From positions 124,001-188,000 of IMG/VR virus record IMGVR_UViG_3300032770_000001: DNA of 64,000 nucleotides; one strand, written 5' to 3'. Of this stretch, positions 4,647 through 16,000 are shown in pieces. Positions within the stretch are counted from its first letter, which is position 1. Each line of letters opens with the position of its first letter. Under the pieces are notes generated by a model. That model saw only the letters and a list, made by a program, of their open reading frames with translations, ran no database searches and had not been told where the DNA came from. Position numbers and translations under genes: made by a program.

Positions 4647-4735
4647 GCATGGGTAGTCAAGCGGCCAACGACAGGAGTCTGTAAAACTCCCGCTCTTAGT
4701 GAGCTACGCAGGTTCAAATCCTGCCCCATGCACCA
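4647..4735 (+). tRNA. tRNA-Tyr(GTA)
   Basis: GCATGGG/CCCATGC acceptor stem, GGAGT-CTGTAAA-ACTCC anticodon arm, long variable arm, encoded CCA. Confidence 0.95.
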
Positions 4736-4736
4736 T

Positions 4737-4829
4737 GCACGTCTGGCTGATTGGTAAGGCAGCGGGCCGTAACCCCGTCTCACCCCAAGGGGTGACTCGA
4801 TGGAAGTTCGATTCTTCCGGCGTGCACCA
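4737..4829 (+). tRNA. tRNA-Tyr(GTA), divergent copy with C33
   Basis: GCACGTC/GGCGTGC acceptor stem, loop CCGTAAC, long variable arm, TTCGATT T-loop, CCA. Confidence 0.85.
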
Positions 4830-4835
4830 AATTTT

Positions 4836-5063
4836 ATGAGAGTCGTTCAGACAGCATTGACGAAGAGAACCGAGACGGGCACCGCCCATCTCATCGCTTG
4901 GCTCCCGGTTGATCCGCGAGTGAAGCGCGGCACTGTTGTGTCGTTGGACAAGGACGACTCGAATCGCTGGACGGTTGAAGCGCAGTACGCAACTCAAGAG
5001 TCAGAGGAAATTAACGACAAATGGGGATTGAGGCTGCCGAAGTCGCAACGCACCGAGCGGTAA
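4836..5063 (+). CDS. Small hypothetical protein inside the tRNA array
   Basis: ATG just after tRNA-Tyr; 75 aa. Confidence 0.6.
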   Translation: MRVVQTALTKRTETGTAHLIAWLPVDPRVKRGTVVSLDKDDSNRWTVEAQYATQESEEINDKWGLRLPKSQRTER

Positions 5064-5267
5064 TTCAGTACGACGACGGCAAATCGCCGAAGTCGGACAA
5101 AGACAAGGTGCCGCAGTGCACGCGCCGTGGACGCCCGTTAGGGTTCTACGTGCTGCTGCCAGACGGCACCGAACGACCGCTGAACATCGGGTTCATGCGT
5201 GTCGGTGAGATGAGTGCTCTTGAGAGCCTCTTAAACGAGATAATGTGCTTTCAAGGGCACATGACAT

Positions 5268-5345
5268 GCGCAGGTGATGGGAACTGGCATACCTAGTCGA
5301 ATGAGATTCGGCTGTTTGTGGGTTCGAAGCCCACTCTGCGCACCA
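5268..5345 (+). tRNA. tRNA-Leu(GAG), short variable loop
   Basis: GCGCAGG/TCTGCGC acceptor stem, GTCGA-ATGAGAT-TCGGC, 5-nt variable loop, TTCGAAG T-loop, ACCA. Confidence 0.8.
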
Positions 5346-5391
5346 AGATATGGTAGACTCCGTGGTATTAGTTAATCATGAGGTCTGCCAC

Positions 5392-6180
5392 ATGAAGCTG
5401 AAGTACACGAAGGAAATGTTAGAGCCGTTGGTGCGAGAGAGCACCAGTTTTCGGCAGGTCATTGACAAGCTGGGTATACGTCAGGGCGGCGGCACTCAGG
5501 CTAACCTTGTTCGTCGCATTAAGGCGCATGGATTAGACACGTCTCATTTCCTCGGACAGGCGCACGGTCGCGGTAAGCTTCGCGTTCGTTTAATTGCTTC
5601 GGAGGTTCTCGTCAATAATCGGACAGGTCGCAGAGAACACACCGATGTGCTTAGACGGGTGATGTTGGAATCGGGCGTCCCGTACCACTGTGAGCTATGT
5701 CCTAATGATGGAACTTGGCAGGGCCGACCGATAGTTTTGGAGATCGATCACCGGAACGGAAACAATCTGGATAATCGATTGGAGAATCTTCGATTCCTCT
5801 GTCCGAACTGCCATAGCCAACAGGTGACGGATGGTTCGAAAAATATTGCACTTCGTGAATTTGAGAAAAAACAAGGCTGGGTTTTGAAGGATAGTACGAC
5901 GCCAACGGAGTTCATGGCTAAGCACTACGAGGAATTGGCTAATAAAGTGCGCGAGCGATATCCGGATATGGCGTCAATGTTGGAGAGAATTGCGGATAAA
6001 GTCCGCTCCTACCTCAGCATGAACAAGGCAACGGTTCGCGTGTTCATTCGTGCTGACGGACAAGGCGCTACTTTTTATGTGCAGGGCGATGAGGAATGTG
6101 ATGCGATTGCAAAAGTCCGCGATCTGGCTCGCGACCTCACGAAAGAAGCGCAGGAGGGTACAAGATTTCGTTTAGTTTGA
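5392..6180 (+). CDS. HNH endonuclease with a C-terminal extension
   Basis: CELC...LEIDHRNGNNLDNRLENLRFLCPNCH; N-terminus of the kind seen in tRNA-linked phage HNH genes. Confidence 0.9.
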   Translation: MKLKYTKEMLEPLVRESTSFRQVIDKLGIRQGGGTQANLVRRIKAHGLDTSHFLGQAHGRGKLRVRLIASEVLVNNRTGRREHTDVLRRVMLESGVPYHCELCPNDGTWQGRPIVLEIDHRNGNNLDNRLENLRFLCPNCHSQQVTDGSKNIALREFEKKQGWVLKDSTTPTEFMAKHYEELANKVRERYPDMASMLERIADKVRSYLSMNKATVRVFIRADGQGATFYVQGDEECDAIAKVRDLARDLTKEAQEGTRFRLV

Positions 6181-6229
6181 TGTGCTTTGTTGTATCAACG
6201 TCAAGTTTTGATGTAACAAAGCACATCGG

Positions 6230-6315
6230 GCCGGAATGGTGGAATTGGCAGACACACTCCGTTCAGCGCGGAGCGGTTAACAGCCATGGGGGTTCAAGTC
6301 CCCCTTCCGGCACCA
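6230..6315 (+). tRNA. tRNA-Leu(CAG)
   Basis: GCCGGAA/TTCCGGC acceptor stem, CTCCG-TTCAGCG-CGGAG, long variable arm, ACCA. Confidence 0.9.
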
Positions 6316-6319
6316 AGTT

Positions 6320-6405
6320 CGGGTCGCGGCGAATGCGAGGGATGTTTTCCGGAAAACGCTACCTCGGTCACGCCGATAAAAACCGCGTGATGAGCGACCT
6401 GACCA
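6320..6405 (+). ncRNA. tRNA-like RNA with an 8-bp terminal stem and an ACCA end
   Basis: CGGGTCGC/GCGACCTG plus ACCA; internal helices GAGG/CCTC, GTTTT/AAAAC, TCACGC/GCGTGA; no T-loop consensus. Confidence 0.55.
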
Positions 6406-6409
6406 TTTT

Positions 6410-6495
6410 GCGGCTGTGGTGGAATGGCAGACACGCAGCGTTGAGGGCGCTGTTCTCGAAAGGGAGTGAAGGTTCAAGTCCTTTCAGCCGCACCA
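6410..6495 (+). tRNA. tRNA-Leu(GAG), canonical
   Basis: GCGGCTG/CAGCCGC acceptor stem, CAGCG-TTGAGGG-CGCTG, long variable arm, ACCA. Confidence 0.95.
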
Positions 6496-6540
6496 GTTTT
6501 AGTACGTTTCCGATTTTCGGAAAATCGGATTTGACAAAAT

Positions 6541-6619
6541 GCGTGGGTGAGGCAATTAGGCAGACCTCTTACGCTTAGAACGTAAGGTTTTGGGGGTTCG
6601 ATTCCCCCTCCACGCACCA
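6541..6619 (+). tRNA. tRNA-Leu(TAG), short variable loop
   Basis: GCGTGGG/TCCACGC acceptor stem, TTACG-CTTAGAA-CGTAA, 6-nt variable region, ACCA. Confidence 0.9.
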
Positions 6620-6624
6620 GTTTC

Positions 6625-6702
6625 GCCGGGATGATGCAATTTGGCAGACATCTTCGCCTCAAAATCGAAGTTCTGCGGGTTCGAGTCCCGCTCCCGGCAC
6701 CA
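6625..6702 (+). tRNA. tRNA-Leu(CAA), short variable loop
   Basis: GCCGGGA/TCCCGGC acceptor stem, loop CTCAAAA, 5-nt variable loop, ACCA. Confidence 0.9.
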
Positions 6703-6765
6703 AACCTCTCAAAACAAAGCACTTAAACCTAGCTAAAAACGACTCCCCGCAGGTAGAATAAGGGT

Positions 6766-6993
6766 ATGGAAATCACCTTGGCTACCATCATCTCGGCGGA
6801 ACTCGCGGCACAGGAAAAGCAGATTCCTCTTCCGGTCGGTGCAGTCATGATCGGCAAGCTGTTCACAGTCATCGAAAATGATGGCTCAGCCGCTATCGCC
6901 GAAGAGGTCACTGATGCTATACTGGCTGCGCGTGTTCGCCTGACGCCGGAGCATCAAGTCGGACAGAAGGTGCGATTCGTCCATTTCAACTGA
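6766..6993 (+). CDS. Small hypothetical protein, possibly leaderless
   Basis: TAGAAT 6 nt upstream of the ATG. Confidence 0.65.
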   Translation: MEITLATIISAELAAQEKQIPLPVGAVMIGKLFTVIENDGSAAIAEEVTDAILAARVRLTPEHQVGQKVRFVHFN

Positions 6994-7002
6994 GAGGCTC
7001 TC

Positions 7003-7182
7003 ATGTCGATCCCCGTACCGATCACCAAAGAAGAAGTCAAGAAGATCACCAGAGAACTCAAGAAGCCGCAGGACGTGATCTGTCTTGACGTGGACTCCCA
7101 CCTTAAGACCCTGCTCGTTGGGCAGAGCATGTTGCTGCTCGGCAAGACCGTCAAGGCAAAAATCGTCAAGGGTTACAAATGA
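7003..7182 (+). CDS. Small hypothetical protein (59 aa)
   Basis: GAGG RBS; MSIPVPITKEEVKK...; ATGA overlap with the next gene. Confidence 0.6.
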   Translation: MSIPVPITKEEVKKITRELKKPQDVICLDVDSHLKTLLVGQSMLLLGKTVKAKIVKGYK

Positions 7183-7499
7183 AGCGCGGCCTGTGGGAGA
7201 TTTTGGTTCCGGTCGTCAATAACCGGGGCAAGAAAATCCCTGTCAAATTTCATCAGGGTTGGGACGCCAAGGTGCGTGCCATCAGCGGCGGCTTGACTAT
7301 CCGTAAGCCGGAGAAGGGTCAGTGGGTTCACCCGGAATCGAAGTCCCTGTTCGCCGAGAAAATGATCCCGGTGAAATTCATGGGCACCCGTGACGAGGCG
7401 GACCAGATCGCACAGATGACGCTGGAGTATTACGACCAGCAGGCGGTCATGTGCTACAAGATCGCGGAAGAAGTCATCATGAAGGTTCGTTCCAGCTAG
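7179..7499 (+). CDS. Hypothetical protein
   Basis: 106-aa ORF, translationally coupled. Confidence 0.7.
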   Translation: MKRGLWEILVPVVNNRGKKIPVKFHQGWDAKVRAISGGLTIRKPEKGQWVHPESKSLFAEKMIPVKFMGTRDEADQIAQMTLEYYDQQAVMCYKIAEEVIMKVRSS

Positions 7500-7511
7500 G
7501 TATTATCTAGT

Positions 7512-7793
7512 GTGGATGACCGCGACACGTTCGACCGCAAGTGCGTAGAGTTGCACATGGCGGTCTATTTTCACATGCAGGCGATTCAGTTCGCCGACGA
7601 GCGCAACGCCGAGCCGGGGGAGATGCGTGAACTCCTGAAACGGCGAACCGATCTGGTTCAGGAAGCGTTGGATTACGTCTACGAGCATTGGGAGTATCTG
7701 GACGAGCCGACCAAGAAAGATTGGGAAGCTGCGGCTGCGGAGTTCCCACTAGCGAGAGAGAATGAAAACAGCGAAGCTACCGACGAAGATTGA
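7512..7793 (+). CDS. Helical hypothetical protein
   Basis: 93-aa ORF; GGTATTA 6 nt upstream of the start. Confidence 0.65.
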   Translation: MDDRDTFDRKCVELHMAVYFHMQAIQFADERNAEPGEMRELLKRRTDLVQEALDYVYEHWEYLDEPTKKDWEAAAAEFPLARENENSEATDED

Positions 7794-8409
7794 CAGTTTC
7801 CGGGGCGTATACCGCTTCCTGTCGAACTTCTACGAGAACTGCCCGGTGAAGCTGTGGGTGAGCACCAAGGGCAAGGTCTTTGCGAATTACGATGGGCTCT
7901 ACGGAATTGTCGAGCACATCAACTCGTTCAATCATCTGCCGGACGATCATCCGGATCGCGATTTTCTGTACTGGATTGAGACTTACGACAACGTCGAGAA
8001 TGCGTATCAGGCGGCGAAGTCCCTCGACATAAACGTTCGTGAGAAGTTCCGTGTTCGCGGCCTGCGTCCGTGGGATGCGAAGAAGCTTGGCGGCACAGTG
8101 AAACTACGTCCTGATTGGGATACAGGCACCGGGACTATGCCGCCGTTTAAGATTGTGGTCATGCTCGGTTTGCTGATGCAGAAATTTGAGCCGACCATGC
8201 TACGGCGTCGTCTGCTTTCAACGATGACGGCTGAATTGATTGAGGGCAACAACTGGCACGACACGTATTGGGGCGTCTGCGACGGGAATTGCAACGAAGG
8301 TCCGCATGAACCGTTCGGCACCAACCATCTCGGCAGGCTGCTGATGATCGTGCGAGGGTATCACGGAGGTTTGTACGATGGCACGAGTATTCTTACAGCG
8401 CGTCAGTGA
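7762..8409 (+). CDS. NADAR (YbiA-like) family protein
   Basis: FLSNFY, ENAYQAAK, LRPDW, LIEGNNWHDTYWG, NHLGRLLM. Confidence 0.9.
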   Translation: MKTAKLPTKIDSFRGVYRFLSNFYENCPVKLWVSTKGKVFANYDGLYGIVEHINSFNHLPDDHPDRDFLYWIETYDNVENAYQAAKSLDINVREKFRVRGLRPWDAKKLGGTVKLRPDWDTGTGTMPPFKIVVMLGLLMQKFEPTMLRRRLLSTMTAELIEGNNWHDTYWGVCDGNCNEGPHEPFGTNHLGRLLMIVRGYHGGLYDGTSILTARQ

Positions 8410-8560
8410 CGCGCTGGATTGGCTGTACGAGTTCCGGATTCCGATTGTTCTGGTGATCCTGCTCGTCCTGATGTTTGCGTTTCATAGCTGCGAGTTCCGC
8501 ATTTCGATTGATTCGCGCCCTTCGGAGACGACGACCGAACAAGGTGCTCGAAAATAATTG

Positions 8561-8589
8561 TTGACAGTGAATCGACTTTCTGGTATTGT
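8561..8589 (+). promoter_or_regulatory. Sigma70-type promoter of the Pro tRNA operon
   Basis: TTGACA 8561-8566, 17-nt spacer ending TGG, TATTGT 8584-8589. Confidence 0.8.
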
Positions 8590-8694
8590 ATATGTGTAGT
8601 CGGCCATGCGACAAGCTTCCTTCTAAACTTGCTCATTGGCGAACAAAAACAGCTTTCGCGATATCCGACTCATATATTAGGAGCTAGTCTTCAA

Positions 8695-8772
8695 ATGACA
8701 TTGATGCGACCAACGCCGACGTTTCGACCGTGCACACCTACCGTGCGCGGGGGAATCGGACACACCCTTTAG
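8695..8772 (+). CDS. Putative 25-aa Pro/Thr-rich leader peptide MTLMRPTPTFRPCTPTVRGGIGHTP
   Basis: AGGAG upstream; Pro codons CCA, CCG, CCG, CCT, CCT; followed by mutually exclusive hairpins. Confidence 0.6.
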   Translation: MTLMRPTPTFRPCTPTVRGGIGHTL

Positions 8773-8870
8773 GGTTCCGGTCGCACCCCGCGCTGCTAGG
8801 CGACGGGGCTCTGGCAAGTTGTGAATTTCCCAACATTACTGCCATTTTTACCCCGTCCTTGTGCGTAAGT

Positions 8871-8945
8871 CAGGGCGTGGTGTAGTGGTTGCATCCCGCA
8901 TTTGGAATGCGGTGGTCGCTGGTTCGACCCCAGCCGCCCTGACCA
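8871..8945 (+). tRNA. tRNA-Pro(TGG), divergent
   Basis: CAGGGCG/CGCCCTG acceptor stem, CCGCA-TTTGGAA-TGCGG, ACCA. Confidence 0.9.
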
Positions 8946-8950
8946 ATCAT

Positions 8951-9027
8951 CAGGGTAGAGTTGGGTCTGGTTCAATCCCCGCCTCGGACGCGGGTGTTCG
9001 CGGGTTCAAATCCCGCTGCCCTGACCA
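8951..9027 (+). tRNA. tRNA-Pro(CGG), divergent
   Basis: CAGGGTA/TGCCCTG acceptor stem, CCCGC-CTCGGAC-GCGGG, ACCA. Confidence 0.85.
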
Positions 9028-9043
9028 AATTTCTGAGGTCAGT

Positions 9044-9202
9044 ATGTTTGAGGCGAGTGAGTGGCGGCATAAAGGTTGTGGTGGTCAGCCCTGTGAGTTT
9101 GAGCCGGGGCGGTGGGCTTGCACGGGGTGCAAGCGTGCATGGTACGCTGGAGCGAACTTTTTCACGTACCTCGCAAACGTGGTCTTTGAAAAGAGAGTCT
9201 GA
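9044..9202 (+). CDS. Small Cys-containing protein (52 aa)
   Basis: MFEASEWRHKGCGGQPC...CTGC; short, support is weak. Confidence 0.4.
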   Translation: MFEASEWRHKGCGGQPCEFEPGRWACTGCKRAWYAGANFFTYLANVVFEKRV

Positions 9203-9350
9203 GGTGGAGCGACAGAGGTGGGCAAGTGGCATCGCTGCCTGTGTCGTTGTACGAAGCGTGGGGGCTTGCTCCTGCGTTAGTCCACAGTACAGCCTGCCCA
9301 ACCGATGCCGGATGGCTGCCGAGTCGCCCATAAATTTCGTTTCGAGGAAT

Positions 9351-9427
9351 CAGGATGTAGCTTAGCTTGGTAAAGCGCGTGCTTGGGGTGCACGAGACCG
9401 GGAGTTCAAATCTCCCCATCCTGACCA
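9351..9427 (+). tRNA. tRNA-Pro(GGG)
   Basis: CAGGATG/CATCCTG acceptor stem, CGTGC-TTGGGGT-GCACG, ACCA. Confidence 0.95.
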
Positions 9428-9459
9428 AAAATTTGAGAAGTAACAAGACCGAGGAAGGT

Positions 9460-9516
9460 ACATGGATGCTGGGGCGGTGTGCGCACACGTGAGTTCAATG
9501 CTCACTCCATGTACCA
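9460..9516 (+). ncRNA. 57-nt mini-tRNA (acceptor stem, T-arm and CCA; no D-arm or anticodon loop)
   Basis: ACATGGA/TCCATGT plus ACCA; GTGAG-TTCAATG-CTCAC T-arm. Confidence 0.55.
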
Positions 9517-9586
9517 TCGGATATTCCGACACGCTAAGATTGTACGGTGCGTGACATCGAGTGGAAGTCTCGAAACAGGTTTTTGA

Positions 9587-9658
9587 TGCGGGGTAGTGTA
9601 GTAGCGCACGGAAGTCTCATAAACTTCCAGACCAGTGCGACTCTGGCGACCGCAACCA
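9587..9658 (+). tRNA. Degenerate tRNA(CAT), Met or Ile2
   Basis: GAAGT-CTCATAA-ACTTC anticodon arm, short D-arm, T-loop TGCGACT, mismatch in the acceptor stem, ACCA. Confidence 0.7.
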
Positions 9659-9661
9659 TTT

Positions 9662-9737
9662 CGGTGTGTAGCTCAATGGCTAGAGCACTCGGTTTGGGGC
9701 CGAGGGGTTGGGGGTTCGAGTCCCTCCACGCCGACCA
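9662..9737 (+). tRNA. tRNA-Pro(TGG), canonical
   Basis: CGGTGTG/CACGCCG acceptor stem, CTCGG-TTTGGGG-CCGAG, ACCA. Confidence 0.95.
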
Positions 9738-9752
9738 TTTTGGAGAACGAAC

Positions 9753-10413
9753 ATGATTGTTGAAATTCGAGCAGCGGAAGGTGGAGATGACGCAAAGCTT
9801 CTCGTGTCCGACCAACTCACGATCTATGCGAGATTGGCGGCTCGGAGGGGTCTTTGAGTTTGAGATAACCGAAGAACGTCCCGGCATAGCGGTGTTTCAG
9901 GTGACGGGACAGGGAGCCCCGGCGTTGTTTGCAAATGAGAGCGGGGGGCACCGTTGGCAGCGAGTTCCGCCGACCGAACGATACGGACGACGGCAGACAT
10001 CGACAATCACTGTCGCAGTTTTCGAGGAGCCGAAGGTCGAAGAGATCAACATTCGTGCTCAGGATTTAGAGTGGGATACGTTCCGGAGCCGTGGTAAGGG
10101 CGGACAGAACGTTAACAAGGTCGAGACGGCTGTTCGCGTGACGCACAAGCCGAGTGGCTTGGTCGTGCGTTGTGAGAATGGCCGTAGTCAGTGGCATAAT
10201 AAGCGAACCGCTTTGCAGATTCTTGCGGCACGGTTGGAAGCGCGAGATCGAGAGCAGAGACAAAGCGTAGTGGTTGCAGATCGTCGGTCGCAGATCGGCA
10301 CAGGGCAGCGAGGCGACAAACGTCGTACAGCAAACGAGCGACAGGATCAAGTCACGGATCATGTCACCGGGCAGAAATGGCGCTATACTGATTACGTGAA
10401 GGGGAACTGGTAA
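9753..10413 (+). CDS. Class I release factor homolog (RF1-like PxT, GGQ, no N-terminal domain 1), expressed through a +1 frameshift at CTT-TGA 9852-9857
   Basis: ORF0 MIVEIRAAEGGDDAKLL...RRGL* (9753-9857); the +1 frame continues with RVPPTE, GGQNVNKVETAVR, RSQIG; GGAG RBS at 9742. Confidence 0.9.
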
Positions 10414-11024
10414 TGGAACAGTATCCGAGTATCGACGGTAGCAGCAAAGCACCCATAGGGGTTCCGTGCATCGCTTTTTATAAGTACGACGGCTCTAACC
10501 TTCGATGGGAGTGGAACCCCAAGAAGGGCTGGTTCAAGTTCGGTACGCGGACGCAGTTGTTCGGTAAGGATGATCCGTTGTGGGGCAAGGCGGTGCCGAT
10601 TTTCATGAACCAACTGGCGGATGAGATCGTGTACCGGGTCAAGCACGTGGAGCGGGGCTGTCAGCGGATCACGGCGTTCACGGAGTTTTTCGGATCGGGG
10701 ACATTCGCCGGACAGCACCCGGAGATGACTGGCGGCAGCGAGGAGAAGGAATTGAGGCTCTTCGATGTCTACCTGTTCAAGCGGGGCTTGATGAAACCTC
10801 GGCAGTTCGTGAAGAGTTTTGGCGATCTACCGCAGGCGGCTCAGGTGATCTATGATGGAAACCTGAACCGACAGTTCATCGAAGACGTTCGGATGGGGCT
10901 GTACCCAGTGAATGAGGGGGTGGTTGCGAAGGGTGACGATTTCATGGTGAAGATCAAGACCTACGCATACCTGAAGCGGCTGAACGAAGTTTACGGAACT
11001 GCATATCGGAACTATTGGGAGTAA
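10413..11024 (+). CDS. ATP-dependent RNA ligase-like nucleotidyltransferase
   Basis: KYDGSN, EFFG, FDV, EGVV, KIKT motifs; TAATG overlap with the release factor gene. Confidence 0.75.
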   Translation: MEQYPSIDGSSKAPIGVPCIAFYKYDGSNLRWEWNPKKGWFKFGTRTQLFGKDDPLWGKAVPIFMNQLADEIVYRVKHVERGCQRITAFTEFFGSGTFAGQHPEMTGGSEEKELRLFDVYLFKRGLMKPRQFVKSFGDLPQAAQVIYDGNLNRQFIEDVRMGLYPVNEGVVAKGDDFMVKIKTYAYLKRLNEVYGTAYRNYWE

Positions 11025-11100
11025 TTTTGAAGGCGATTTTTCAGTTTGTTCGCAGGATTTTTCGCCGGGGCGAGTATCGTCCTATAGGGTGTTGGTGAGG

Positions 11101-11177
11101 CGGGGATTAGCTCAGCTTGGTAGAGCGCACGCTTCGGGAGCGTGAGGTCGCAGGTTCGAATCCTGCATCCCCGACCA
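11101..11177 (+). tRNA. tRNA-Pro(CGG), canonical
   Basis: CGGGGAT/ATCCCCG acceptor stem, CACGC-TTCGGGA-GCGTG, ACCA. Confidence 0.97.
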
Positions 11178-11216
11178 ATATCAAACCCTTTAGATAGACC
11201 GATATTTGGAGTCCCC

Positions 11217-11642
11217 TTGGCAAACGACGATAGTTTTTTTGAAGGTGGAGAGCGGCAGGAGAACCTGAACCGCCATAACGCCCGGAAGGGTGGGTATGAC
11301 CCGTTTAGGGTCACCGCAGGTCAAGAAAGACGCGGTGAGCGTATTACGTGGGTCGATGTCTGGCTGGCTAATCCAGACGGAGCCGCCAATCACGATGAGG
11401 CTGAGGCACTCTCGGTAGGCGACGTAATGAAACACGTAGCGTCAGAGAACGATTTGTATGTAGGTTTTGAGAAAGAACTGGCTGAGGTTCAGCGAGAGTC
11501 TTTCGATGAGTCAGGTGTCAAGCTGGCGAACATGGGGTCGAGAGAGTTCTTCAAAGACTCCCCACCCCCGGCACCAGTACCCGCCCCACGTGTGGCGGCA
11601 CCAGTGAAGAAGTCGGATGACGATTTCTTCCCAAAATTTTAA
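11217..11642 (+). CDS. Acidic hypothetical protein
   Basis: TTG start after GGAG; Pro-rich tail ending DDDFFPKF. Confidence 0.5.
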   Translation: MANDDSFFEGGERQENLNRHNARKGGYDPFRVTAGQERRGERITWVDVWLANPDGAANHDEAEALSVGDVMKHVASENDLYVGFEKELAEVQRESFDESGVKLANMGSREFFKDSPPPAPVPAPRVAAPVKKSDDDFFPKF

Positions 11643-11643
11643 C

Positions 11644-11721
11644 GCCTGTGTAGCTCAGACTGGCTAGAGCGCCCGTCTCATAAGCGGGAGGTCGGGGGTT
11701 CGATGCCCTCCACAGGCACCA
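11644..11721 (+). tRNA. tRNA(CAT), elongator Met or Ile2
   Basis: GCCTGTG/CACAGGC acceptor stem, CCCGT-CTCATAA-GCGGG, ACCA. Confidence 0.92.
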
Positions 11722-11909
11722 GTTTTAGGGAGACCGGGAACCTGCGGGCCCTTCCGAGGCTATAGCACCAGCGGCAACGGTGATTAACTGCCCAAACACA
11801 GTATCGGATACCCGGCAATTCTATTCAACAGGAGGATGAAGCAGATGGCTAACCCTAGCATCACCGTACATACCGTGTAAGGTGTGGACGGTGGGAGGTA
11901 AAAAGCCAA

Positions 11910-12227
11910 ATGCGTCACCCTCGCACCCGCGACGAACGTCGCGCTGTACGCGAGCAGATCATTGCTCGTCGCAAATTTATCGCAACCCAGATTTGGGACA
12001 TTCCGTCCTACGTCCGCCCTCCGCATGAAGGCGAATGGAACCGTTGGTCGAAGCCAGAGGAATGGGAGCCATTTCAGTGGGGTCGCTACCACAAGTGGAA
12101 CATGAACTGTGGCGATACCATGTGTCATGGTGCGAAGTATTTCAAATGCGCTTCCAAGCGTCGTAAAGCACGCAAGGAAGCCGAGTCAACCGCCGAGTTT
12201 CGTCGTCGAAATAAGGCCATCGATTGA
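11910..12227 (+). CDS. Basic hypothetical protein
   Basis: 105 aa, Arg/Lys/Trp-rich; GGAGG upstream. Confidence 0.65.
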   Translation: MRHPRTRDERRAVREQIIARRKFIATQIWDIPSYVRPPHEGEWNRWSKPEEWEPFQWGRYHKWNMNCGDTMCHGAKYFKCASKRRKARKEAESTAEFRRRNKAID

Positions 12228-12252
12228 CAATGAAAAGACTTTGGACTAGCGT
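12224..12252 (+). promoter_or_regulatory. Possible sigma70 promoter of the ncRNA array
   Basis: TTGACA 12224-12229, 17 nt, TAGCGT. Confidence 0.45.
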
Positions 12253-12309
12253 ATTATTTATTGCGGGGTCTGGTTAAACCCTAGTGGCGATGACCACTCC
12301 CCGGTTTTA

Positions 12310-12505
12310 CCCCGGCACCCGATACGCAACGGGGCGCTAGTGATTAGGAAGGGTCGAGGCGAACTGCGTGCCCCCAAGGTGGGGCTAGCCGAAAGCCCGG
12401 ATAACGTCCGACGTGGTGCCCGGTTCTAGTCAACCGTCGTGCGTCTACCTTTCGGGGAATTACAAGTACCCGAAAGGACGTGATGATGCAGTGCACTTGC
12501 CGGGG
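12310..12505 (+). ncRNA. Structured RNA A (about 195 nt, class unknown)
   Basis: Closing stem CCCCGGCA/TGCCGGGG; CCTTTCGGG/CCCGAAAGG; GCCCC/GGGGC. Confidence 0.55.
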
Positions 12506-12526
12506 TTCTTTGATCTTTGATAGTTT

Positions 12527-12762
12527 TAGAGTCGAGTGGCCCGTGATTCAACTGGTTCAGTGGTTTCAGTAAGAGGGTCGAATGGCCTGTCAGGGACAAA
12601 TAGATACTCCCTGAGCGATGTTAGACCGCTATCCCCAGTATAAAAAACGCAGCAGCGGGGGCAGTATCCGTAAGGACTGCGGGAGGCTCCACGAAAAGGT
12701 GCTAGACAACCTGTGGGAGGCCGTATCGGGGTTCTAGCTAAACCGACCTGTGCTCGACTCTA
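12527..12762 (+). ncRNA. Structured RNA B (about 236 nt, class unknown)
   Basis: 11-bp closing stem TAGAGTCGAGT/GCTCGACTCTA; flanked by T-runs. Confidence 0.65.
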
Positions 12763-12770
12763 ATTTTTAT

Positions 12771-12862
12771 GGCGGATGCCCGGATAGCGTAAGCAGTCAC
12801 GTGAAAGTCGTGTTAACAGCCGGGGCGGGGATGTTGGCGTAAGCCAAGCGAACCATCCGCCA
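12771..12862 (+). ncRNA. Structured RNA C (92 nt, GNRA loops, ends in CCA)
   Basis: GGCGGATG/CATCCGCC closing stem; GTAA, GAAA and GTAA tetraloops. Confidence 0.6.
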
Positions 12863-12867
12863 AGGTT

Positions 12868-12939
12868 TTGCCGCTGTGGTATGAAACGCTACCAAATGGG
12901 CACGGTTCCGAAAGGACGCAATGGCCCTGCCAGCGGCAA
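12868..12939 (+). ncRNA. Structured RNA D (72 nt)
   Basis: TTGCCGCTG/CAGCGGCAA closing stem; TCC-GAAA-GGA hairpin. Confidence 0.55.
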
Positions 12940-12948
12940 CGTTTTTGA

Positions 12949-13025
12949 TGCGGGGTGGAGCAGTCAGGTAGCTTGTCGGGCTCATAACCCGAAGGTCGGC
13001 GGTTCAAATCCGTCCCCCGCTTCCA
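12949..13025 (+). tRNA. Initiator tRNA-fMet(CAT)
   Basis: Three G-C pairs in TCGGG-CTCATAA-CCCGA; unpaired 1:72 (U:U); CCA. Confidence 0.9.
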
Positions 13026-13029
13026 AGTG

Positions 13030-13318
13030 TTCGCCGCCGTGGGTTGTTAGTTGTACTCAGAGTGCCGTCAGGAACAGCAAGATCGTACTAGTACCTGAGA
13101 GCGCAACCCACGGTTTAGAGGCGATTGCCGTCACCTGCGGATGTAGTACGGTCTGGGCGTCAGGTGCGCCGGGTCGGTGACCCAGACCGGAGCGACATCG
13201 TTGACCGGACATTCCGGTTTCGTTAGCAGGTCCTCATGGGACATCAGCATGGTGCCTGAGTAGTGCTGAAGTTCGAGGAACCGCGAAAGCGTGAAACCTG
13301 TGAAGCGATCCTCAGGCC
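13030..13318 (+). ncRNA. Structured RNA E with an H-type pseudoknot
   Basis: CCGTGGGTTG/CAACCCACGG; crossing helices CACCTG/CAGGTG and CGGTCTGGG/CCCAGACCG. Confidence 0.6.
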
Positions 13319-13331
13319 GATCTTTGAAAAG
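13319..13331 (+). promoter_or_regulatory. rRNA-type boxA-like element
   Basis: GATCTTTGAAAAG between two structured RNAs. Confidence 0.55.
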
Positions 13332-13332
13332 T

Positions 13333-13482
13333 TTGCGGCGGCGTTCCCGGTGTCCCGTCAATAGACTGGTTCCTGACCGGATACGTGAGTAATCGTTCTT
13401 CAAGGGGTGAAATAAAAGAACGGCGCAGAACAGGTTCCTGCGCGTGGGGCTGTGATTTTCCAGCTACTACCTCTCGCCGCAA
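13333..13482 (+). ncRNA. Structured RNA F (150 nt)
   Basis: TTGCGGCG/CGCCGCAA closing stem; GCGCAG/CTGCGC and CGTTCTT/AAGAACG hairpins. Confidence 0.55.
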
Positions 13483-13489
13483 TATAACA

Positions 13490-14025
13490 AATCTGCAAGT
13501 TGCATTCCGATGCCCGAAGCGCCCGATGAGGGTTTGCGGACGGTAGCGTGACTTGCGGAGGGTAGGTGAACGGCTTCACAGCCGCCGTCGAAAGACGGGC
13601 AAGTCCGCCGTAAATTCGGGACGACGTTCACCCGGTCAGGCACTACTAAAACAGAACCGTGGGGTGCCGTCAGTCGAGAGACTGGATGTTTCTGATTGCG
13701 CATGGCATGGCGAGGTCTCCCTATGTTTGGACGGAGGCAGGCCCTTTTCGACAAGGGACATACGTCAGAGCGGAATCACGGTGGGTATGTGGTTGGAACC
13801 ATCCATGTAGTGGCCTGACGCCTAATTTCAGTTTCCGGTCGTGGCGGAAAAGAGACGATAAACAAATAGAGACGCTAAAACTCGCTGAGAGGATGTACCC
13901 TGATTTCGACAGGGATTCTCAGCCTGTGAGACTCTGTAGGTAGCACCCACGTCTGACAGATGTTAGTGGCTCGAAAGAGCAGCAGAGTCATGCACCGTGG
14001 AGAATCGGGAATCGGTGCCGACTGG
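13490..14025 (+). ncRNA. Large ornate RNA (about 540 nt; GOLLD/ROOL-like candidate)
   Basis: Many nested helices including a long-range 13635-13646/13807-13819 pairing, GNRA loops, no credible CDS. Confidence 0.65.
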
Positions 14026-14103
14026 AAGATTTTTGGAGACAACATGAATAGCACTCACACCCCGACCGGATGACCCTTGCTCATCCTTCGGAGGTAAGGT
14101 AAT

Positions 14104-14361
14104 ATGGCATGTGACACCTGTATCTTTCTGAACAACGTTCGGACCCGCCCGGTAGGGAAGGGAAAGGACGAGCAGAAAGGCGAGAAGCTGGAGCCCTGCT
14201 CCATGAAATATGCCTGCAATCCGTTTTGGGACGGAGCGCAGGGAGTGGGCAAGGTCGTGACTGAGTCGTACTGTGCGACCTGCTCGGAAGTAGCTGACAA
14301 ATGTGGATGCACGCAAGGATTGCGTGTGATCCGGCAGCGCAAGCTGCATTATGCTCGGTAA
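14104..14361 (+). CDS. Cys-rich small protein
   Basis: 85 aa with CxxC repeats; GGAGG upstream. Confidence 0.55.
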   Translation: MACDTCIFLNNVRTRPVGKGKDEQKGEKLEPCSMKYACNPFWDGAQGVGKVVTESYCATCSEVADKCGCTQGLRVIRQRKLHYAR

Positions 14362-14363
14362 CC

Positions 14364-14450
14364 ATGAAGATTGACGACGGAACATTGATGGCGATTGGAC
14401 TGCTGGTGTTTGCAGCGTTTTACATTCTGTCTCCATTGATCGTCGGGTAA
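14364..14450 (+). CDS. 28-aa single-TM peptide
   Basis: MKIDDGTLMAIGLLVFAAFYILSPLIVG. Confidence 0.45.
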   Translation: MKIDDGTLMAIGLLVFAAFYILSPLIVG

Positions 14451-14451
14451 G

Positions 14452-14645
14452 TTCGTGCGGCTGACTCGCCTTGAGCAGGGCTATCTTAGGTGCCCTGAGC
14501 GCACACAAGCTTCAGCAGCGACGGAGTTATGACCCGTAGGGGGTTATGAGCCCTTTGGCTGCTGAGAGGGAAGTGAGTACCAGTGGCAACCGCGAAAGCG
14601 CCGATGCCCACGCCCTCCGTCCAGTTGCCTACACGTGCGCAACCT
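14452..14645 (+). ncRNA. Pseudoknotted structured RNA G
   Basis: GCGCAC/GTGCGC closing stem; CAGCAGC/GCTGCTG; loop-loop GACGGAG/CTCCGTC; GGCAAC/GTTGCC. Confidence 0.6.
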
Positions 14646-14707
14646 TTGCTTTTGGACGTGAATATTAAAATGCGAAGGAACGTCATCATAACGTGGTATT
14701 AGGTAAT

Positions 14708-15034
14708 ATGGCTGCTGAAATTCTCGAAGACGTTTACTTGCACATTGGCAACGGTGGGGTCCAGTTTCAGGTCCACCGGGACAATAAAGGGCGTTGCCTC
14801 CTGAAGGTTGGAGCATCGCATTTCGGTCAGAAGACCAACACGATGGAGTTGCTTGTGACTCCCGATAGCCTGCGGCAGATCGGCGAAGCTTTTGTTCGCG
14901 CATCGCAGCAAGAGTTCCCCGGCAAGCCGTATGTTTACAGCGCCGAGGTTCCGGTGTACACTGGTTCTGGTAACGCCGAAAGCAGCACGGGCGGCGATGA
15001 ACCAAAGCAGGAACCGCAGCAATTGACAGTTTAA
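14708..15034 (+). CDS. Hypothetical protein
   Basis: ATG 6 nt after GGTATTA; 108 aa. Confidence 0.7.
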   Translation: MAAEILEDVYLHIGNGGVQFQVHRDNKGRCLLKVGASHFGQKTNTMELLVTPDSLRQIGEAFVRASQQEFPGKPYVYSAEVPVYTGSGNAESSTGGDEPKQEPQQLTV

Positions 15035-15090
15035 CGTTCCCGAACGCAAACCGGGTGGTGGATCGTATCACTGAGACGTGATGCCCCTGC

Positions 15091-15120
15091 GGGGCAACCA
15101 AAAGTTGCCCCCGTTGTTTT
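15091..15120 (+). terminator. Intrinsic terminator
   Basis: GGGGCAAC-CAAAA-GTTGCCCC followed by CGTTGTTTT. Confidence 0.65.
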
Positions 15121-15132
15121 ATCAAAGATTTT

Positions 15133-15315
15133 ATGGCAGAAACGACCGAACGTTATATCGTGACTCACCACCAGCCATCTGAGTGGTACAACGTTTGGGA
15201 TAAACTGTGGACGACTGATGTCGTAAAAGTCAGCAGTCTCACAGGACGCGGCAAAGAGATTGCCGACAAGATTTGCGCAGACTTGAACGCTCACCCGTTC
15301 CCGCCTGCGGAATGA
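15133..15315 (+). CDS. Small hypothetical protein
   Basis: 60-aa ORF. Confidence 0.55.
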   Translation: MAETTERYIVTHHQPSEWYNVWDKLWTTDVVKVSSLTGRGKEIADKICADLNAHPFPPAE

Positions 15316-15411
15316 GTTTTCGAACTATTAGGATCATTACTGAATGAAGCTCTACGACTACACTCTCGACTTGTTTACCAGCCCCTTCCGGGGCTTGTAA
15401 TACGTGTGTCT

Positions 15412-15488
15412 GGGGCGGTAGCTCAGTCCGGTAGAGCGAGGGCCTGAAAAGCCCTGCGTCGTAGGTTCAAATCCTACCCGTCCCACCA
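15412..15488 (+). tRNA. tRNA-Phe(GAA)
   Basis: GGGGCGG/CCGTCCC acceptor stem, AGGGC-CTGAAAA-GCCCT, ACCA. Confidence 0.95.
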
Positions 15489-15514
15489 AATTTCTCAATC
15501 ACACAATTCAAATT

Positions 15515-16000
15515 TCAAGGGGACGTAGCTGATGTGGTCTTAGCGCGGGCCTGAAAAACCTGAGATGGAGGTTCGATTCCTCTCGTCCCCACCAATTTTC
15601 TTCGCGCCGTAACTTTCCGATGACAATTCGCGCAACGTACCTCGCACTTGGCGATCTCCCGTTTGATGGAGTCTAAACTGTATCCGCTTCTGACCATGAA
15701 ACAAATCTCCAGCCGTTTCTTACCACGAACATGGTCAAAATCAAGGCATACCGGATCAGTCTCCGGGCAGTCCACGCAGCCATGAGTCGCGAGATATGAT
15801 TGGACATACCGTTTGTTCCGTAACCTATCCGCACGCTTTCGAGCCCTGACCTTAGTTGCTCGCGTTTTCGAGTTCGCGTAGTATCCGGTATTGTAGTTGG
15901 ACATACAGGTCTTGCAGTGTGAACGGCGAGTGCCGAGGGTTTTATTCCGGAAATGGAACTCGCCCTCGGCTTTATTCGCATTGCATTTCGTACAAATCAT
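15515..16000 (-). CDS. HNH endonuclease whose 3' end overlaps tRNA-Phe in antisense
   Basis: CVDC...LDFDHVRG...CEVRCANCH; ATG 16000 overlaps the upstream TGA. Confidence 0.85.
   Translation of the reverse strand: MICTKCNANKAEGEFHFRNKTLGTRRSHCKTCMSNYNTGYYANSKTRATKVRARKRADRLRNKRYVQSYLATHGCVDCPETDPVCLDFDHVRGKKRLEICFMVRSGYSLDSIKREIAKCEVRCANCHRKVTARRKLVGTRGIEPPSQVFQARAKTTSATSP
15519..15594 (+). tRNA. tRNA-Phe(GAA), divergent
   Basis: GGGGACG/CGTCCCC acceptor stem, loop CTGAAAA, TTCGATT T-loop, ACCA. Confidence 0.9.

Follow-up and report, generated by a model that had tools for sequence, protein, structure and literature searches.

Why should a viral release factor gene of the release factor 1 (RF1) type be interrupted by a frameshift cassette of the kind found in prfB, the gene for release factor 2 (RF2)? 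The locus in question lies at positions 9,753 to 10,413 of a 64,000-nucleotide stretch of DNA (hereafter, the window) covering positions 124,001 to 188,000 of the IMG/VR virus record IMGVR_UViG_3300032770_000001, a 455,708 bp sequence from a wetland metagenome; the guanine-cytosine (GC) content of the window is 53%. Our reading, to which we assign a probability of about 0.78, is that this gene encodes a 219-residue class-I release factor of the RF1 lineage, devoid of domain 1 and made only through a programmed +1 frameshift. The relation between the stop codon that gates the shift and the stop codons that the product would itself recognize is then the main issue.

An RF1-type gene split over two frames

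The preliminary description of this DNA, made from its letters alone, had placed the gene in two frames on either side of a Shine-Dalgarno, CUU and stop cassette of the prfB type, and the sequence is as described. The frame-0 piece (translated MIVEIRAAEGGDDAKLLVSDQLTIYARLAARRGL) ends in CGG AGG GGT CTT TGA G, and the +1 piece opens at the GAG codon at 9856, giving a full product of 34 + 185 = 219 amino acids, the length of about 219 originally proposed (Table 1). The shorter piece matches positions 106-138 of the PCRF and RF1 profiles and the longer one positions 158-319 of the RF1 profile. Also as originally noted, the N-terminus given by the list of open reading frames (ORFs) is wrong: this mechanical call (9757..10413, TTG start, 218 residues) starts in the +1 frame, as does the public gene call (P0001, 208 residues), whose N-terminus is meaningless. 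The pattern GGAGG-N3-CTTT-RA has one match in the window on both strands, against 0.06 expected, and at least one match in 6 of 100 shuffles. Such rarity alone is weak evidence; what decides the matter is that 86 of 91 related loci are arranged identically, as described in the next section.

The window decodes well by the standard code, with ORFs of 1483, 865 and 1723 residues back to back under code 11; therefore, TGA is a stop here, and an alternative genetic code is ruled out for the window by the tight packing of these long ORFs. In a crude set of 78 ORFs from the window, the stops are TAA in 35, TGA in 26 and TAG in 17, two-thirds of them being readable by RF1. Other routes across the junction do not fit. 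Frame-0 read-through of the gating UGA would be useless because a further frame-0 TGA follows at 9861-9863, two codons on, and the homology lies in the +1 frame. Transcriptional slippage is unlikely on a run of only three T, and termination followed by re-initiation finds no start codon conserved near the junction across the family. No 3' stimulatory RNA structure was detected at the site (folding z = 0.28), and an Rfam search of the region returned a transfer RNA (tRNA) match only and no other known RNA family.

By hidden Markov model profiles, by comparison with PDB sequences and by predicted fold, the product is assigned to the RF1-type class-I release factors, in agreement with the preliminary identification from its PPT and GGQ motifs. 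Its NCBIfam scores are 189 bits for RF1, 134 for prfB and 94.6 for PrfH, with the RF1 equivalog cut-off (400 bits) and that of PrfH (TIGR03072, 166.65 bits) both missed; among PDB sequences, RF1 of T. maritima scores 161 bits, RF2 88 and PrfH 58. The RF-1 domain (PF00472) is matched at E 3e-33, QRVPPTE aligns with QRVPVTE of T. maritima RF1, and the decoding stretch GGHRWQRVPPTE...GRRQTST retains the PxT motif of RF1 together with the Gln and Thr that read the third base. An ArfB/ICT1 identity is ruled out by the presence of domains 2 and 4 and by a match limited to residues 62-96 and scoring 43 bits against a cut-off of 100. For the fold, we used an AlphaFold (AF2) model of a natural contiguous homolog, P0103 (predicted local distance difference test score, pLDDT, 80.5). 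Foldseek searches with this model gave RF1 structures as top matches (E 2.5e-19), with a template modelling (TM) score of 0.80 to 1rq0, a closed crystal form of RF1. In the model, residues 2-7 form a strand and residues 12-31 a helix of domain 2; since both sit in the part corresponding to the frame-0 piece, the protein is predicted to need that piece.

The profile match begins at RF1 position 106, and domain 1, which contacts RF3 and the L11 stalk, is absent. This claim of the preliminary description stands as well: a tRNA-Pro gene ends 15 nucleotides before the ATG, leaving no room for a segment coding for domain 1, and no domain-1-like sequence was found upstream in any of the 86 loci. Where long open stretches do lie upstream, in loci of high GC content, they are of low complexity and each has a Met one to four codons before IVEIRAAEG. 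According to PMC1586002 (citing Mora et al. 2003), domain 1 is the contact for RF3, and RF1 without it performs codon-specific release in vitro and works in vivo. The product would thus probably be independent of RF3, with a release activity that its sequence predicts to be specific for UAA and UAG, and it is probably a minimal stop-codon-dependent terminator.

The decoding region varies across the family. Most members carry the tripeptide PPT, fewer carry PPN (16 of the 86 family rows in the tree set) and a few SPT; HRWQ is found in 56 family rows, against HRVQ in 15 of 15 canonical RF1 rows; and about half of the family rows have Q instead of H before TS. Some members (L043, L051, L057, L064 and L081) lack a normal PxT loop, an example being GGHRWQEKSGGRMQTST. 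Some members of the family may have relaxed canonical stop recognition or lost it.

Table 1. Coordinates of the release factor gene, its frameshift cassette and the adjoining genes in the window.
Feature	Position	Strand	Basis or remark
Start codon ATG of the release factor gene	9753-9755	+	Read off the sequence
Frame-0 segment, 34 codons (MIVEIRAAEGG...ARRGL), first strand and helix of domain 2	9753..9854	+	PCRF and RF1 profiles
Internal Shine-Dalgarno GGAGG, putative frameshift stimulator	9844..9848	+	Spacer GGT at 9849-9851, then CTT
Putative slippery P-site codon CTT (Leu34)	9852..9854	+	No variation among the 86 frameshift-type loci (entropy 0)
Frame-0 stop TGA gating the shift, context TGA-G	9855..9857	+	Read off the sequence
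+1-frame segment, 185 codons and TAA (10411-10413); rest of domain 2, domain 3 (GGQ), domain 4	9856..10413	+	RF-1 domain E 3e-33, PCRF E 1e-10
PPT, RF1-type PxT "tripeptide anticodon", within GGHRWQRVPPTE	9967..9975	+	Aligned to PVT/PAT of RF1
GGQ peptidyl-tRNA hydrolysis motif	10099..10107	+	Invariant in both family alignments
Shine-Dalgarno-like GGAG of the true start	9742..9745	+	Read off the sequence; 7-nucleotide spacer to ATG
tRNA-Pro(UGG) gene	9662..9737	+	ARAGORN; Rfam tRNA 62.7 bits
Minimal Rnl2-like RNA ligase, 203 residues, KYDGSN motif, nucleotidyltransferase domain only	10413..11024	+	phrog_548 E 2e-6; Atlas neighbours PF09414

Conservation of the cassette and its origin

An alignment of homologs, scanned against IMG/VR, brought up 342 relatives, and the 80 best were retained. 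In a second scan, covering prokaryotes with a single genome for each species, the best 80 loci comprised 11 of the frameshift release factor family and 69 full-length prfA. The family set thus holds 91 loci (80 from IMG/VR and 11 prokaryotic), and codon statistics refer to its 81 non-identical frameshift genes. In 86 of the 91 loci, exactly 34 codons from the aligned start are followed by CTT and a stop, with homology resuming in the +1 frame; the 69 canonical full-length prfA genes of the same scan, which serve as a negative control, have no such cassette (0/69). Neither CTT nor the initial T of the stop varies among the 81 genes. The preliminary description had held that contiguous homologs without CTT-TGA would speak for a sequencing error or a pseudogene, whereas 86 of the 91 relatives carry CTT and a stop at codons 34 and 35. 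The conservation of CTTTGA, which it proposed to check, was borne out for CTT and for the presence of a stop, and not for the identity of that stop, which is TGA in 62 of 81 genes.

Selection acts on both pieces and on the cassette itself. Ahead of the site, variability is highest at codon position 3 of frame 0 (entropy 1.61 versus 0.87 and 0.63), and past it the peak moves to the +1 frame; because codon-position variability switches frame at the site, each piece is under purifying selection in its own frame. Selection on the Shine-Dalgarno shows in the nucleotides themselves: 57 of 67 genes encode Arg31 by CGG, a codon that makes up 17.8% of the Arg codons in the rest of these genes (P 7e-33), and 50 of 53 encode Arg32 by AGG, whose share in the rest is 10.7% (P 5e-45). 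GGAGG stands exactly 3 nucleotides ahead of CTT in 46 of the 81 genes.

The cassette is also present in published genomes. The huge-phage genome LR745208.1 (L166) reads CGGAGGGGT CTT TGA C, unannotated there, and the six metagenomic huge-phage GenBank records that we checked are unannotated. A DNA search of GenBank phages returned tRNA matches only, and the search in protein mode found no isolate-named record with the cassette. Among cellular genomes, the 11 prokaryotic family loci are mostly from Myxococcota, with the frameshifted domain-1-less RF1-type gene in genomes and metagenome-assembled genomes L083-L087, L088, L089, L092, L103 and L132; one of these (L088) is the complete chromosome of Archangium gephyra SDU49 (NZ_CP102578.1, about 3.54 Mb). 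The neighbours of the Myxococcota copies show no significant Pfam match, and no tRNA genes lie nearby; these copies may hint at the host range of the phages.

In two IMG/VR loci, codon 35 is a stop with no change of frame: L057 (IMGVR_UViG_3300037993_001242) reads CTC TGA CTG and has a shortened decoding loop, and L073 (IMGVR_UViG_3300037067_027616) reads TAT TAG ATG. Expression past this stop would take read-through or stop recoding or, in L073, restarting at the ATG that follows it directly.

Public protein sets largely miss the junction, which is read through in only 3 of the 120 best public relatives (P0083, P0091 and P0103). Most of the others either are given a +1-frame start upstream of the shift site and hence a spurious N-terminus, often ...GGVF[E/S]FE, the translated Shine-Dalgarno-CTTT cassette, or begin downstream of the site and are shortened. 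The mis-called N-termini look like a systematic annotation error. The three exceptions are contiguous homologs of 219-220 residues reading MIVEIRAAEGGDDAK...ARRGL-SFEI..., and since RRGL-SFEI is the junction expected from a +1 shift after Leu34, they support the predicted junction ...ARRGL-EFEITEER... of the window protein.

Of the further contiguous relatives, two have lost both the Shine-Dalgarno and CTT (L162, CGG CGT GGA TTA TCG; L163, AAA AAC GGG TTG AGC), and a third (L164, CGG AGG GGC TTT AGT) is the cassette minus one nucleotide. In a tree rooted with canonical RF1, the family forms one clade apart from canonical RF1 (support 99), in which the basal members L072 and L075 are contiguous with GGN TTT GAR (Gly-Phe-Glu) and the frameshift clade comes next (98). 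At the shift position, canonical RF1 has a conserved aromatic residue (...RGW-K.E..., W or Y) and the basal contiguous members have F. The simplest reading of these sequences is a one-nucleotide insertion in ...CGG AGG GGN TTT GAR..., turning Arg-Arg-Gly-Phe-Glu into Shine-Dalgarno-CTT-TGA. Because the shift site lies in domain 2 and that of prfB in domain 1, we infer that the cassette is convergent, having arisen in the RF1 family independently of prfB.

What the gate may respond to

By analogy with prfB, expression would run as follows. After initiation at ATG 9753 and translation of 34 codons, CUU (Leu34) would occupy the P site and UGA the A site, with GGAGG, 3 nucleotides upstream, pairing with the tail of the 16S ribosomal RNA. 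A stop read promptly would release a 34-residue dead-end peptide. A stop read slowly would let tRNA-Leu(GAG) slip from CUU to UUU (TTT 9853-9855), a re-pairing modelled on prfB, and translation would resume at GAG 9856. Slow termination at the gate would thus raise the output of the release factor, and in the window phage the gate would behave as an open-loop sensor of host termination capacity.

The family, however, does not hold to one gating stop: besides the 62 TGA genes, 17 of the 81 have TAG and 2 have TAA. The stop type switches at least 16 times on the tree, at least 6 of them on well-supported branches alone, and TAG needs 14 tree changes against a shuffled mean of 15.7, a scatter near that of shuffled labels. 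Sister genes may differ (L078 has TAG, L079 TGA), and close relatives of the window gene (L006 and L008) have TAG. By comparison, 98.6% of 8,164 genomes have TGA as the prfB gate, and TAG is found in 0 of 8,164 motifs (PMC12421855). Since the gating stop varies, the conserved design seems to be a slowly read stop that gates expression, rather than specificity for RF2; judging from these stop counts, the common principle would be a gate read by one class of release factor, TAA, which both classes read, being nearly absent.

For the window gene, host RF2 and not the product itself is most likely the governor of the gate, because the gate is UGA and the motif of the product is RF1-type (UAA/UAG). 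By the same analogy, the efficiency of UGA termination would set the yield, and the autoregulatory case, in which the gating stop is cognate for the product, does not apply here if the specificity predicted from the motif holds. The cross-wiring to RF2 put forward in the preliminary description is thus the most direct reading of the UGA in the window, and it fails as a conserved principle, the stop being interchangeable within the family. Lineages with TAG could be self-regulated, while those with TGA, the window's included, would respond to host RF2. We regard it as possible, though less likely than not, that the product is either an omnipotent or relaxed release factor regulating itself at any stop after CUU or, in the UGA lineages, the output of a cross-paralog sensor of host RF2 termination that supplies an RF3-independent RF1. 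Either version, if true, would represent a viral sensor of host termination that evolved by convergence on the prfB device. Overall, a gate sensing general termination capacity is favoured; its main competitor is a plain attenuator, and an omnipotent self-regulator has a small chance.

Several observations weigh against the main reading of the locus. Among the sequencing runs searched, the site is covered by the probable source sample alone, and the runs found to carry the locus are DNA contigs only, with no RNA run among them. A recognizable Shine-Dalgarno is absent in 12 of 81 homologs. The PPN tripeptides and shortened loops of some relatives mean that canonical stop recognition may not hold family-wide. 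As the product probably cannot read UGA, the feedback loop of prfB is not closed and the purpose of the gating is uncertain. Finally, because the gate toggles between TGA and TAG in close relatives, the control may be a simple attenuator with no sensor.

Such a fixed attenuator, in which the cassette sets a low, constant yield of a possibly toxic release factor or delays it, with host release factor levels varying too little during infection to be sensed, is in our view unlikely, although it is the strongest competitor. It would account for the near-unconstrained stop identity on the tree and for the members without a Shine-Dalgarno, and in B. subtilis over-expressed RF2 does strong harm and over-expressed RF1 modest harm (PMC12421855). 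However, a weak ribosome-binding site would suffice for that purpose, whereas CTT is invariant and the Shine-Dalgarno codons are selected at about 45-70% protein identity; moreover, the scarcity of TAA indicates that the termination rate at the gate is under selection.

Closed autoregulation as in prfB, by a product of relaxed or omnipotent specificity, or one able to act at UGA and so to read its own gate, is considerably less probable. The toleration of TGA, TAG and TAA gates and their frequent switching would be easiest to explain if the product read all three, and the family-specific decoding changes relative to canonical RF1 (HRWQ, Q before TS, a few SPT) could be seen in the same light. 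To our knowledge, though, there is no natural omnipotent bacterial class-I release factor, and the residues that recognize the third base, Gln and Thr, are of the RF1 kind. A self-regulator specific like RF1 should favour TAG, yet TGA dominates. The first-position Pro of PPT also speaks against it, since the published tripeptide rule limits the second base to A (PMC1586002).

The chances are slightly poorer still for a rescue factor similar to PrfH, acting on damaged or stalled ribosomes independently of a stop codon and paired with the adjacent RNA ligase as PrfH is with RtcB2. The domain architecture, without domain 1, is that of PrfH (PMC1586002), the stop of the release factor gene overlaps the ligase start in the window, a ligase lies near the gene in two separate subclades, and a few relatives have a shortened decoding loop. 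On the other hand, the score is far below the PrfH cut-off and RF1 is much closer, the PxT loop of the window protein is intact, and the ligase is of the Rnl2 type, not RtcB, and occurs in only 8 of 80 phage loci. This count makes the analogy with PrfH-RtcB weak, and co-location is better explained by a shared tRNA and translation module (28 of 60 loci have tRNA genes). Membership in PrfH and a conserved ligase partnership are ruled out by the profile score and the ligase count, and the suggestion in the preliminary description that the gene answers to ribosome damage, in keeping with the logic of its neighbours, is weak on the same grounds.

A sequencing or assembly error, or a decaying pseudogene, can practically be discarded: a 1-nucleotide indel was not excludable from a single window whose site is spanned in one sample (there, an independent assembly shows 0 differences and no indels), but the comparative data refute it, with the identical arrangement in 86 loci from independent samples and assemblers, among them the GenBank huge-phage record and the complete Archangium gephyra chromosome, frame-specific purifying selection on both pieces, and a non-random choice of Shine-Dalgarno codons.

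Neighbourhood and comparison with known systems

The release factor gene is enclosed by 16 tRNA genes at 4647-15594 on the plus strand, grouped by amino acid (Tyr x2, Leu x5, Pro x5, Met x2, Phe x2). Two of them, at 5268-5345 and 6410-6495, are tRNA-Leu(GAG) genes; this isoacceptor would be the one to decode CUU and to slip on it. Across the family, tRNA genes adjoin the release factor gene in the 28 loci mentioned above, and a phage transfer-messenger RNA (tmRNA) in two: in L024 (1597-1955) it lies ~450 nucleotides upstream of the release factor start, and in L029 (3063-3414) a few bases past the stop. The gene belongs to the translation module, with tRNA arrays and tmRNA, of very large phages. 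Directly downstream in the window, the ATG of the RNA ligase overlaps the release factor stop (TAATG), placing both in the same operon.

Phage-encoded RF1 and RF2 have been reported for huge and stop-recoded phages (Al-Shayeb 2020; Borges 2021 preprint), and the gene described here is likewise carried by very large phages among tRNA genes. In the passages searched for release-factor terms, these papers list RF1 and RF2 genes and mention neither a frameshift nor a missing domain 1 (PMC7162821; 10.1101/2021.08.26.457843). Four megaphages of 630-735 kb and 27-32% GC (L167, LR756502.1; L168, LR756501.1; L170, LR745206.1; L171, LR756504.1) carry contiguous domain-1-less RF1-type genes. Each gene has one or two TGA codons in frame, for the most part at sites that are aromatic or hydrophobic in relatives (e.g., GYASI-TGA-LQG), suggesting Trp as the reading of TGA (code 4) in these phages; TAG and TAA interrupt none of the genes. 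They appear to be TGA-recoded, in contrast to the window phage with its standard code.

In the full-text literature, with subscription journals scarcely covered, we found no description of programmed frameshifting in an RF1-type gene or of this family, nor any report of a frameshift in prfH. A 2025 survey of 12,753 genomes found the frameshift in prfB and not in prfA, and never TAG in the motif (PMC12421855), and in the PRFect paper every CUU-stop case in RECODE is prfB (PMC10885494). The family described here breaks this rule, by which the CUU-stop +1 frameshift was taken to mark prfB alone: an RF1-lineage gene of very large phages and some Myxococcota appears to have acquired the device separately, with TGA, TAG and occasionally TAA. 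It thereby offers a natural experiment on the purpose of the cassette, autoregulation versus the sensing of general termination, and a possible tool, a compact and probably RF3-independent RF1 for cell-free and genetic-code-expansion work.

Compared with the PrfH of RtcB2-PrfH modules, the product is likewise a class-I release factor homolog of about 200 residues without domain 1, with an RNA ligase adjoining in the window; however, its sequence is far nearer to RF1, its decoding loop is intact, and its partner is neither RtcB nor conserved. With bacterial RF1 (prfA) it has in common the GGQ and PxT motifs, the Gln and Thr that read the third base, and the PCRF and RF-1 domains; its closest matches in sequence and fold are also to RF1. 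It differs in lacking domain 1 (about 105 N-terminal residues), in a shorter C-terminal tail, in the family-specific HRWQ and PPT, and in needing a frameshift, which prfA is reported not to use (PMC12421855).

A close parallel is the prfB cassette itself (Shine-Dalgarno, 3 nucleotides, CUU UGA C). The two agree in their elements and in the order and spacing of these, in their place near the 5' end of a class-I release factor gene, in having no 3' RNA structure, and in the loss of the Shine-Dalgarno and CUU from in-frame relatives. The Shine-Dalgarno is GGAGG in the window and AGGGGG in E. coli prfB, and the base after the stop is G instead of the C usual in prfB. Unlike prfB, the gene is viral and of the RF1 lineage, its shift site falls within domain 2 where canonical RF1 has its conserved aromatic residue, and its gate would be non-cognate for the product in most members, with TAG in 21% of the family genes.

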